In this document: positions 23,201 through 29,200 of the stretch, one piece after another
Numbering within the stretch: the first letter of the stretch is position 1
Layout of the letters: each line of letters begins with the position of its first letter
Assembly: GCA_964035545.1 (NCBI GenBank)
Contig: OZ037768.1
Span: 5,674,741-5,738,740 of the forward strand
Direction of reading: 5' to 3'
From: Bugula neritina
Lineage: Eukaryota; Animalia; Bryozoa
DNA: 64,000 nt
Notes under the pieces: generated by a model
The model's database searches: none
Seen by the model: only the letters and a program-made list of their open reading frames with translations
Told to the model about the DNA's origin: nothing
Translations under genes and position numbers: made by a program

Positions 23201-26200
23201 TTTACCTTCTGTTTTGTTTAGAGTTAAATATTCAAATAAGATAACAGTAAGCTTCCCATACTGTATGTTACTATCAAACTCTTACAGCGATGCCCCAATC
23301 AGTGAGCTGTCGCTGGAACTACTGCTACTCCAAGTAGTGCTACCTTCACTCCTAGATCAAGGACACACAAGGACATGGTTTAAAAGTCTGGTGGTTTGTT
23401 GGACTCGTTGTGTTGCTAATCTATTGAACCTGAATTCTTACCTTCTGGGAAATGAAGATCTTGAAGATAAGGTTTGTGTGACGCTCCCATTTATTTTAAT
23501 TTAGTTTCCAACATTTTTAAACTTTGCTACAACCCCAAAGGCGCTTGAAATAAAAGCATAAATATATAAACAATGCTGTTTGTTTTTTTCCAGTGGAATT
23601 AATTTTAGTCTAAAGGAAAAAAAATTAAAATTTATCTCGAATGTGTTTGGAAATAGTCCAAAAATTTGGGCACCTGCTTTTCTACATTCAAATATTGTTC
23701 ATCATTTGTAACGAGCTCGTTATCAACCACACTACTTTCCATGTCACTGAATTTATGTTGTAAAGTGTTTCAATAAATTTGCATAAGTTTGATTTATATT
23801 TTGGCTTTCAAAATCTGTTATTTCAGCATCGGAATGAGACTATATCAATAATGTTTTAATTAAATTGATGATAGTCTGTAGTATATAACACTTTGTCATG
23901 TTCATTGTATTGAATCACTCTAGGAGAATATTATAAGAGTCGATAACGACCCAGTTCGAGTTGGGGTGCCGGCAGCTGCTGTTAATCCTGGGGGTCCTGT
24001 GGGAGAGGCACACCAGGCCTTGCTGAATATGCACGGATCTTCGGGCTTCAAGCCATACTATAGGCCAAAGTATTTTCATCTTCGTGTAAGTGTGAAACTC
24101 AGTAGTTTATTCATAGTTTGAAAGCCTTACCTGTGACTCCCAGGCTAAGCATCTCCAGTATTTGCTTACTTTACTATTACTCAATATGATATTTTTTCAC
24201 CTTGGACAGGTTTTAGCAGTCAAGTTTTGTAGTAGGAAATAATGAAAATGCTAAAAGTCCTGCCACAATAAGTTGTAATTTTGAAGCCATAGAAACCTAG
24301 ACTAGTGATGATGATTTCACATAAACATATTACATAATGTCAAGGTCGATCTAGAACAAAACCACAGTTATGCTTGAATTTCTCCAAGACAGCAACATTG
24401 ACTGGAATAGGCTTAAAGATGTTGCAGGTGACATCTTAGGTTTCCAGGTGATACCACACGTCCTCTCTCTCACTGTCAACTTTCTCATAGAAAAAGAACA
24501 ATATGACTGGTACAGTGATAATGTGAGAATCCCCTTTTGGGGTGTGTTATTCAAACGAATCAACACAGTGTTTGCGGTGCTCCACACTGGTATGGGATTA
24601 GCCTCATTTCTTGTATTCCAAAAGAACATTGGCTGGGTCAGTCCTGCGGTTCCCCTAGTACTGTGTGGAGTACAGGTCATTGCTGACTTTACATGGAGAC
24701 CTCTGTTTTTCAATCAGAAGAATTGGGATAGAGCGTTTCGTCACGGCACAGCTTGCACCCTGCTGTCCTCCGCACTCTGCTATCTCTATTACAAGATAGA
24801 CTGGTCAGCGGGGGTGTTGATGGTGCCATACTCGCTGTGGTGGTTTTACCTCACGTCTGTTGTCTGGTACATCAGACTGGCTAACGAACCACCCGAGCCA
24901 TGGAGAAGGTTGTCTTTTGGAGGGTTTGAAAGGGTTCGGCGCCCCACCGTGCCCACGGGTAGCGTCAGTGACTGACTAGGCTGGTATATTAATGAGCTGC
25001 CATATTACGCTCGCAGGGTCAGCCGTATTAGACGCTCTGTCGTGGACTCTGTTTATTCAGCATTAGAAGATGAAGATAACATAACGTGATGCAATACTCT
25101 GCGTATCCTGTGTGAACTGTTTTAGTTTTCTTGTAATTGAATAATAATAAAGCAAGTATAAACTTTTAGCGAGTGTCTATTGTTTACCTTCAGTAGTCTA
25201 CTGGTATATTTTACCTGATTAGTTGTGGTGCCGTCACTATACTGTAACAGTGTAACTTTGTTGCTGATATTTACTATATCTGCGTTGAGCCATGTTATGA
25301 TTGCTGAACAGCCGTATGACTGACATGTACTTCTTGTAGGTGTTCATCTTGTTGATGCTAATGTTCATAAGTCTATTCACTGCCAGCGTGATATCTCTAA
25401 TATTACCAGGTGAGCTTTACCTTACAGGTTAAAACTAATCCTGCGAGGTATTTTCTCCACCCTGAAACTTGCACCAATAGAGAAAATACTCGATAAACTT
25501 ATTGATTTTTTTCTGCTTTAGCTATGAAAGTGAAAATTATGTAACATTTCTATGTCACTGGAAATATGGAATAACAAATTACTATGAATATTTTAGTATT
25601 CATCGGCCGTAAGCTAATGGAGATTTGGATGCCCAAGACAAAGGTGCACGAGTTATACACTGCAGCTTCTGGACTTTATGTTTGCTGGCTGGCATTGAGA
25701 TCCATTGTAATTCTCTCCTCCTGGGTTACTTTGGGTTGGAACAGCCTCATGACCAAGTTTAAGAAGTGGGCTGTTATTGTAAGTACATCTGAATAATAAG
25801 TTGTAAGTACATCTGAATAATAAGTTGTAAGTACATCTGAATAATAAGTTGTAAGTACATCTGAATAATAAGTTGTAAGTACATCTGAATAATAAGTTGT
25901 AAGTACATCTGAATAATAAGTTGTAAGTACATCTGAATAATAAGTTGTAAGTACATCTGAATAATAAGTTGTAAGTACATCTGAATAATAAGTTGTAAGT
26001 ACATCTGAATAATAAGTTGTAAGTACATCTGAATAATAAGTTGTAAACTTGTACATCTGAATAATAAGTTGTAAGTACATCTGAATAATAAGTTGTAAGT
26101 ACATCTGAATAATAAGTTGTAAGTACATCTGAATAATAAGTTGTAAGTACATCTGAATAATAAGTTGTAAGTACATCTGAATAATAAGTTGTAAGTACAT

Positions 26201-29200
26201 CTGAATAATAAGTTGTAAACTTGTACATCTGAATAATAAGTTGTAAGTACATCTGAATAATAAGTTGTAAGTACATCTGAATAATAAGTTGTAAGTACAT
26301 CTGAATAATAAGTTGTAAGTACATCTGAATAATAAGTTGTAAACTTGTACATCTGAATAATAAGTTGTAAGTACATCTGAATAATAAGTTGTAAGTACAT
26401 CTGAATAATAAGTTGTAAACTTGTACATCTGAATAATAAGTTGTAAGTACATCTGAATAATAAGTTGTAAGTACATCTGAATAATAAGTTGTAAGTACAT
26501 CTGAATAATAAGTTGTAAGTACATCTGAATAATAAGTTGTAAGTACATCTGAATAATAAGTTGTAAGTACATCTGAATAATAAGTTGTAAACTTGTACAT
26601 CTGAATAATAAGTTGTAAGTACATCTGAATAATAAGTTGTAAGTACATCTGAATAATAAGTTGTAAGTACATCTGAATAATAAGTTGTAAGTACATCTGA
26701 ATAATAAGTTGTAAACTTGTACATCTGAATAATAAGTTGTAAGTACATCTGAATAATAAGTTGTAAGTACATCTGAATAATAAGTTGTAAGTACATCTGA
26801 ATAATAAGTTGTAAGTACGTCTGAATAATAAGTTGTAAGTACATCTGAATAATAAGTTGTAAGTACATCTGAATAATAAGTTGTAAGTACATCTGAATAA
26901 TAAGTTGTAAGTACATCTGAATAATAAGTTGTAAGTATGTCTGAATAATAAGTTGTAAGTACGTCTGAATAATAAGTTGTAAGTATGTCTGAATAATAAG
27001 TTGTAAGTACATCTGAATAATAAGTTGTAAGTACATCTGAATAATAAGTTGTAAGTACATCTGAATAATAAGTTGTAAGTACATCTGAATAATAAGTTGT
27101 AAGTACATCTGAATAATAAGTTGTAAGTACATCTGAATAATAAGTTGTAAGTACATCTGAATAATAAGTTGTAAGTACATCTGAATAATAAGTTGTAAGT
27201 ACATCTGAATAATAAGTTGTAAGTACATCTGAATAATAAGTTGTAAACTTGTACATCTGAATAATAAGTTGTAAACTTGTACATCTGAATAATAAGTTGT
27301 AAGTACATCTGAATAATAAGTTGTAAGTACATCTGAATAATAAGTTGTAAGTACATCTGAATAATAAGTTGTAAGTACATCTGAATAATAAGTTGTAAGT
27401 ACATCTGAATAATAAGTTGTAAGTACGTCTGAATAATAAGTTGTAAGTATGTCTGAATAATAAGTTGTAAGTACATCTGAATAATAAGTTGTAAGTACAT
27501 CTGAATAATAAGTTGTAAGTACATCTGAATAATAAGTTGTAAGTATGTAGGACTTACTGTGTCATATTAAATTGCTCAAATTGAACAGTGTCAAATATCT
27601 GAAAACTCACACTAACTCTATTAGATATATGTTCATATAATATTAATGCATTATATTATGTCGCATTCTGTTGCTATAACTTGCCTGTATCGACACAGTG
27701 GGCCAAGGTAGTTGTTGTGACTTTCCTACTGGTTGGAGTTGTGCCCCTACTTATCGGACTTCTCTTTGAGCAAATAGTAGTTGTGCCGTTGAGGGTGCCT
27801 TTACACCAGTCCCCTGTATTCTTTCCCTGGCAGGTAGGCCTAAGTCTTTGTTTCTTGATTTATATAATATCTATTAATAGCTTTATATTGCTAAACTCAG
27901 CATTTAGCACACGGAACATCCATTGCCATATTAGACTCTATATACTATGTTATGTAGCCTGTTGGCATTCTCATTTATATTTGAGTAAATTTCATTTTAT
28001 TTTTAATAAATTTACCATCAATATGTTGTTATCCCCCCATGACGTGATAGCTCGGCGTTGTAAAATGCCCTCACAATACTGCTTTGCTGTAGGACTGGGC
28101 TCTGGGCGTGCTGCACACTAAAATCCTCTGTGGTTTGACTATGATAGGACCTCAATGGTGGCTGAGGAGATACGTGGAGCGGGTGAGTCATACACTTACT
28201 CACCCTACGCAGTGTTTCAGTTTGGCTAAGTCTCCATTGTAGTTTAAATCTTTTGACTGTAACAATACATTAATCAAATCTTCATAACTTCCCAGTTTCA
28301 TGAATAAAAGAAGGAAGGCCACTTGAGCTGTCGGCTAGTGACACCTTCAGACACCTATGGCTGACAGATCATAATTTTTTGTCTCATTTTTGACAAGTAG
28401 TCTGTTTAGTTTTCACGTATAGTTATTATTTTAAGATTTATGTTCTCTCGTACAGTTGTATGAAAATGGAGTATGGAATCTGAATCTGAAGGAGGTGCTA
28501 ACCAATCTCTGTCTGCCTGTAATCCTTGTGCTCAGTCTAAATCTGGCTGTACCTTATGTGATAGCCATGTCTCTTGCCCCACTCTGTGGTAAGCCTCATT
28601 CTTCTGAATACTTATTTATGAAATAGTTAGGAATTTGGGTTCGGTGTGGATACGTCTTTGTTATCCTAAAAACTACACAGCTTTGCTTCTTGTCTTGCAA
28701 AATTTTTTTTTATACAAATCTGTAACCTTGCTAATGGTCTAGTTCGTACGTCTGTTGCTGCCGAATTTACACTCGTAGATGTGTATGTTTTAGGAGCTTC
28801 TCTGGAAACTCAGAATCTGATATATCGAAGAATCTATCCATCCGTATTCGCTTTCTTCTGCTTGCTTACTGGATTCCTTTTTAACTTCAAGCAGTTTAAA
28901 AAACTCTATGAACATATAAAAAATGACAAGTAAGTGGTTTGCCATTTACTCTTGATCAGTTCTACTGAATATTAAATTGTTTATTGAATATTTATCTGCA
29001 CTAGACATGGTAAACTTTAAAAATTTTAATTTAATCAGAGTAAACAGTGAGCTTCAAACTAGGAATTGGAATTTGAAATGTAAAAAACTGGTTGTGTGAT
29101 TACAATCTTAATTTATGTTTCCTTAAGACTTGAAGTTGGAATTTCAATTTGAATTTCTTTCGGCAATGTAGCTTAAGTGTAAATAATTTAAAGATTTTGT

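Follow-up and report, generated by a model that had tools for sequence, protein, structure and literature searches.

Candidate programmed UGA-CUAG stop-codon readthrough in an intron-nested TSPO gene of the bryozoan Bugula neritina

In all likelihood, a TSPO gene nested in a MARCH6 intron of the bryozoan Bugula neritina has a UGA-CUA(G) stop that is read through in a programmed and functional way, as judged by comparison of sequences among relatives, and the gene very probably makes both a short and a long form. Candidate programmed readthrough with two isoforms had been proposed in a first-pass annotation of the window, which is the whole 64,000-nt stretch of DNA analyzed here. The proposal is now supported by comparative evidence, namely the motif, the frame and a synonymous bias in orthologues. 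The features of the locus are as follows.

23924-24085, + strand: host exon (MARCH6/Doa10-like E3 ligase) preceding the nested gene (spliced joints in 4 RNA runs)
24086-25339, + strand: host intron (GT..AG) holding the nested gene (joint 24085-25340 in 4 RNA runs; same flanking exons at orthologous loci)
24340-24348, + strand: candidate promoter element of the TCAAGGTC type, ~30 nt before the ATG (similar elements in other lineages)
24370-24975, + strand: single-exon TSPO/MBR ORF of 201 aa (Pfam PF03073, 68.5 bits, cut-off 24)
24973-24979, + strand: predicted leaky stop context TGA-CTAG, continuing GC as in OPRL1 (TGA in 12/12, CTA in 10/12, CTAG in 8/12 lineages)
24976-25086, + strand: putative 37-codon readthrough extension (similarity in frame 0 only; pN < pS; alignment A2; AlphaFold helix 2-36, pLDDT 79)
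25087-25089, + strand: second in-frame stop, read from the sequence (here TGA; TAA, TAG or TGA in relatives)
25146-25151, + strand: first AATAAA, a candidate poly(A) signal (in each locus with a hexamer, the first one lies past the second stop)
25340-25409, + strand: host exon downstream of the nested gene (RNA joints; homologous exon in orthologous loci)

The nested TSPO gene and its host

The TspO_MBR domain occupies residues 27-169 of the ORF and is followed by a conserved basic tail containing RRLS and RRPT. Sequence searches and structure prediction took the ORF and the extension one at a time, and the host gene was handled by single exons. The model of the ORF adopts the TSPO helical-bundle fold, with a Foldseek probability of 1.0 against Rhodobacter, Bacillus and mouse TSPO; the match to RsTSPO has a TM of 0.77 by target, mouse TSPO is the nearest solved sequence, and residues 1-39 are modeled with low confidence. 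Domain and fold are common to the bryozoan gene, the animal TSPO (mouse 2MGY/2N02) and the bacterial TspO, but the bryozoan gene differs in being long-branched, intronless and MARCH6-nested, with a conserved basic tail and the proposed readthrough extension. Residue T162 of the ORF is an invariant Thr and aligns with position 147 of mammalian TSPO, where 2MGY and 2N02 differ (Ala/Thr). A second TSPO was not found in the 216-Mb genome with the Pfam model and a canonical-TSPO profile, a search that works exon-wise and can miss genes. Outside this group, close relatives of the ORF were absent among 1.8 billion representatives, the next matches reaching at most 80 bits versus 351-357; these distant matches are labeled centipede, fungi, insect, fish and algae, and neither the labels nor the tree resolve the origin of the TSPO gene.

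The TSPO gene has no introns and shares the strand of its MARCH6/Doa10-like host, a different exon of which matches yeast DOA10 (E 1.4e-7). Wherever the contigs extend far enough, orthologous loci have the same flanking MARCH6 exons, and a homologue of the downstream exon is present in L002/3, L006, L009, L012, L013/14, L019 and L021. The ORF is covered by contigs of the 4 RNA runs that hold spliced host transcripts, at a depth of 3-8 except in one run, where it is 137. The nested gene appears to be transcribed, these contigs carrying no strand or transcript ends. Past the stop, coverage is thin and comes from 2 of the 4 runs. An RNA-run contig (L007) runs unspliced across the stop and reads TGA, with the limits that such contigs have neither strand nor ends and drop minor variants. 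In RNA run X3 (L007), a single contig at depth 137 covers the entire host intron from exon to exon (window 24059-25369), and contigs are absent from the other introns. Slow splicing or retention of the intron could account for this, as could pre-mRNA that bridges the nested transcript. In two independent runs (X9 and X11; window 24752-24972), contigs of low depth share near-identical starts and ends, the latter within 3 nt of the UGA, which may be a coverage effect or a branch in the assembly graph.

Upstream of the start, a TGTCAAGG element (window 24337-24348) recurs at 20-35 nt in several lineages (L002, L004 and L019, with half-sites in L009 and L013); in L019 it is an exact TCAAGGTCA without an ATG in it. 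The element resembles an ERR/NR5A nuclear-receptor site more than a uORF, and it is a possible promoter of the nested gene's own. In L013, a lineage without the proposed readthrough, the first in-frame ATG lies just 35 nt past the host exon donor (L013:564-600), so that any promoter there must overlap the host exon or transcript. Further along the host gene, a 24-nt AT-rich minisatellite (window 25779-27548) begins at the next host splice donor and contains the donor sequence repeatedly.

Conservation of the stop context and of the extension

The stop was described in the first-pass annotation as GAC TGA CTA G, followed by 37 further open codons up to the TGA at 25087-25089, with isoforms of 201 and 239 aa, the first AATAAA only beyond the second stop (at 25146) and a coding-like GC content. 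Each of these points holds: the motif was found at 24970-24979 with TGA at 24973-24975, the lengths check out (201+1+37 = 239), and the GC content of the ORF (0.48) and the extension (0.44) compares with 0.32 in the next 111 nt and 0.34 in the 5' part of the intron. The accompanying caution that 37 open codons alone could be chance was also sound (P about 0.04-0.11). The TGACTAG 7-mer occurs 5 times in the window versus 9.3 expected, and only because of the orthologues does the readthrough signal here stand far above chance. The bases before the stop are themselves conserved (window 24963-24979; Ser always AGT, Asp GAC in six lineages and GAT in L019). They make up an inverted repeat of 5 bp that spans the stop, and stops in all three frames lie within 11 nt.

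Protein and DNA searches yielded 11 further lineages at about 52-60% identity, giving 12 with the window; these are presumably other bryozoans. Their 4-fold degenerate sites are saturated (mean identity 0.30 in the first ten lineages), and the tree is mostly star-like with three small clades, the 12 lineages being not fully independent of each other. The expected conservation of TGACTAG was borne out: the first stop is TGA in all 12 lineages and CTA follows in 10, as CTAG in 8, CTAA in L019 and CTAC in L012, with unrelated bases in the remaining two (L013/14 and L021). Against a CTAG background of 0.27%, finding the motif in 7 of the 11 has P about 5e-15, or about 2e-11 with the clades collapsed. 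Where a Leu codon follows the stop it is always CTA, which makes up 17% of Leu codons (P 3e-6). This invariance of the first extension codon points to a constraint at the nucleotide level. TAA, TAG and TGA all occur at the second stop, which varies freely.

Loss of the motif matches loss of the extension, as seen in L013/14 (TGA-ACAT) and L021 (TGA-TCGG, 6 codons), and the extension was lost at least twice; between L013 and L014 a 2-nt indel directly follows the stop, as in a UTR. Both L019 and L021 turned up after the prediction had been made. In the former, UGA-CUA is retained along with a homologous extension of 40 codons; the latter has neither.

The reading frame of the extension is conserved as well, another check that had been proposed in advance. 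In the nine CTAG/CTAA lineages the frame stays open for 32-73 codons, versus 4-18 in the following ORF (paired Wilcoxon test, p 0.004; with the window left out, Fisher's combined p is 6e-5). The translations are alike in frame 0 only, with a mean z of 2.8 versus -0.03 and -0.2 in the other frames. Ten of 28 frame-0 pairs reach p<0.01 and none does in the other two, where stops are numerous; the similarity between the window and L008 reaches z 14. Substitution in the extension also proved to be synonymous-biased, with pN 0.39-0.56 versus pS 0.74-0.83. When the near-conspecific L005/L007 are compared with the window, the first 34 codons contain 4 synonymous and 0 non-synonymous changes (p 0.002), an amino-acid difference appears at the last codon only, and both indels seen among near-conspecifics (+6 and -21 nt) are in frame. 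The extension evolves far faster than the domain (pN 0.42-0.46 versus 0.09 for L002/L019), and L006 is without 7 codons of the conserved core, as an allele or an assembly error.

Common to the extensions is an R-x-S-hydrophobic motif with an invariant Ser (25036-25038 in the window), present in three copies in L004 and often followed by acidic residues. The motif lies within a predicted amphipathic helix, which has an acidic end, and single sequences give a weak helical-moment signal (p 0.02-0.33). The phosphorylatable RRxS/T tail proposed earlier stands in part: RRx[ST] occurs in four of the eight CTAG extensions scanned but is absent from L019, and the conserved element is R-x-S-hydrophobic instead. 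No Pfam family was found in the extension. The peroxisomal PTS1 signal is not conserved, the C-termini being different and an SHL end occurring in only one of nine extensions. A stimulatory 3' stem was not apparent, folding z-scores lying between -2.1 and +1.9 without a shared pattern; RNAalifold gave only a 5-bp hairpin over the stop itself, without covariation, and Rfam on 12 loci returned chance matches only. The L008 extension (L008:1111-1317) ends in a hydrophobic, membrane-like stretch. Together with L015 (1154-1363) it contains an H-F-x-D motif among acidic residues, which may resemble an FFAT motif.

Proposed mechanism and competing explanations

In the proposed mechanism, the CUAG context would weaken termination by release factor, and a near-cognate tRNA would sometimes be inserted at the UGA; near-cognate insertion at UGA gives Trp, Cys or Arg. 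Ribosomes going on to the second stop would be a minority (in mammals, examples range from a few to about 30%), and the products would be TSPO proteins of 201 and 239 aa. Given the topology of TSPO, the tail would lie in the cytosol. A model with about an even chance of being right holds that the extra tail on the cytosolic side of the membrane forms an amphipathic helix, with a Ser that can be phosphorylated and an end that is acidic, and acts as a docking or regulatory arm. A broader idea is that TSPO is the visible tip of a widespread bryozoan UGA-CUAG readthrough, in which the tail switches the sole TSPO of the animal in a regulated and tissue-specific manner. It is rather unlikely; the abundance of bryozoan readthrough cannot be read from the one gene studied here, and reports of abundant readthrough are confined to Pancrustacea (PMC5100048).

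Selenocysteine inserted at the TSPO UGA would fit the invariance of the in-frame TGA. Moreover, Sec is probably in use in this genome, as judged by a glutathione peroxidase gene that has a TGA in frame together with a SECIS-like hairpin. The exclusion check suggested in the first-pass annotation nevertheless came out clean, with no SECIS-like element after the stop in 10 lineages (300-600 nt available), whereas the same scanner does detect the element behind the GPx control (L017, G000:C1:8340584-8341576; canonical SECIS-like hairpin at L017:3199). Rfam also found no SECIS at the TSPO loci, its SECIS model being insensitive, with nothing over cut-off in the whole genome. Furthermore, Cys occupies the site in no relative, all 12 lineages having TGA; there is no redox motif and no CxxU, the UGA follows a disordered tail, and conservation of CTA is unexpected under Sec, which makes selenocysteine a very improbable reading. 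The extension might instead be used through splicing, with CTAG as a 3' acceptor, or through UGA-to-UGG RNA editing, rather than by ribosomal readthrough. CTAG does end in YAG, TGAC-TGAC resembles a branch point, and the locus lies within a transcribed intron. Against this, L019 has a conserved extension with CTAA and no AG there, the phase-0 host exon would be joined to frame +1, an unconserved frame with many stops, and the ORF tail lacks a conserved phase-1 donor at a usable distance. The splice joint is likewise absent from the RNA contigs and the L007 contig reads TGA at the site, such contigs dropping minor variants. Splicing or editing is thus highly unlikely.

A last group of alternatives comprises chance, an assembly error, a nonsense allele private to one sample, and the decaying remainder of a once longer protein with basal leakage only. 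In their favor are the P of about 0.1 for 37 open codons alone, the fast evolution of the extension and its loss in some lineages. In addition, most of the human UGA-CUAG genes (23 in all) are without a coding signature (PMC4132726). Yet a sense codon, which would have marked the window's stop as a nonsense allele, was found at this position in no individual or relative, and three further near-conspecific samples all read TGA. Since synonymous sites are saturated, a neutral remnant would have been erased, yet motif, frame and residues persist. An origin by chance, error or decay is therefore extremely unlikely, and programmed readthrough remains the preferred reading. Two other candidates were tried and rejected. 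An independent AUG start of the extension finds no Met in the extensions of the window, L002, L009 and L019; a nuclear code with TGA=Trp is at odds with TGA serving also as second stop and with the loss of the tail in some lineages.

Relation to known readthrough genes

The same stop and 3' context, with UGA-CUA invariant and the G nearly so, is found in AQP4, OPRL1, OPRK1 and MAPK10 (Loughran 2014, PMC4132726). Across vertebrates, none of the first six nucleotides varies; OPRL1 has the context UGA-CUAGGC, and about 12 nucleotides past the stop are enough (PMC4132726). UGA-CUAG in four mammalian genes gave 7-31% readthrough, which was nearly abolished on deleting it (PMC4615788). TSPO and the vertebrate UGA-CUAG genes are alike in a conserved in-frame extension, in needing no 3' RNA structure, and in a C-terminal tail on a membrane protein (PMC4132726). 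In contrast, the bryozoan case concerns another protein family (TSPO) and another phylum (Bryozoa, within Lophotrochozoa), and its extension is far more variable in length. At the level of sequence, each feature of the UGA-CUAG class that could be settled is present in TSPO, and the bryozoan readthrough probably had an origin independent of the vertebrate genes.

In the cryptic peroxisomal isoforms MDH1x and LDHBx, UGA-CUAG readthrough adds a C-terminal piece, as proposed here; these have PTS1, whereas the TSPO extensions have no conserved PTS1. The sole lophotrochozoan precedent for readthrough found in a literature search is the Platynereis FVa/EFLGa neuropeptide precursor (PMC3890597), and the search found no report of readthrough in TSPO or in bryozoans. 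The Platynereis readthrough is a proposed one, confined to some neurons, and concerns a secreted peptide precursor, unlike TSPO (PMC3890597).

If true, the readthrough described here means that the UGA-CUAG signal, defined in vertebrates and alphaviruses, reaches a lophotrochozoan phylum. It would also be the first readthrough isoform found for the TSPO family and points to a putative cytosolic tail. The function of TSPO is itself debated. The natural variants of the motif (CTAG, CTAA, CTAC and lost) map onto extensions kept or lost and thereby provide a ready series for context rules. Gene callers mis-annotate such loci, either by truncation or by reading the TGA as Trp. Four database proteins (P0002/3/5/7), included in alignment A1, have a W at the stop as an artefact of a gene caller that used another code, and their DNA reads TGA.
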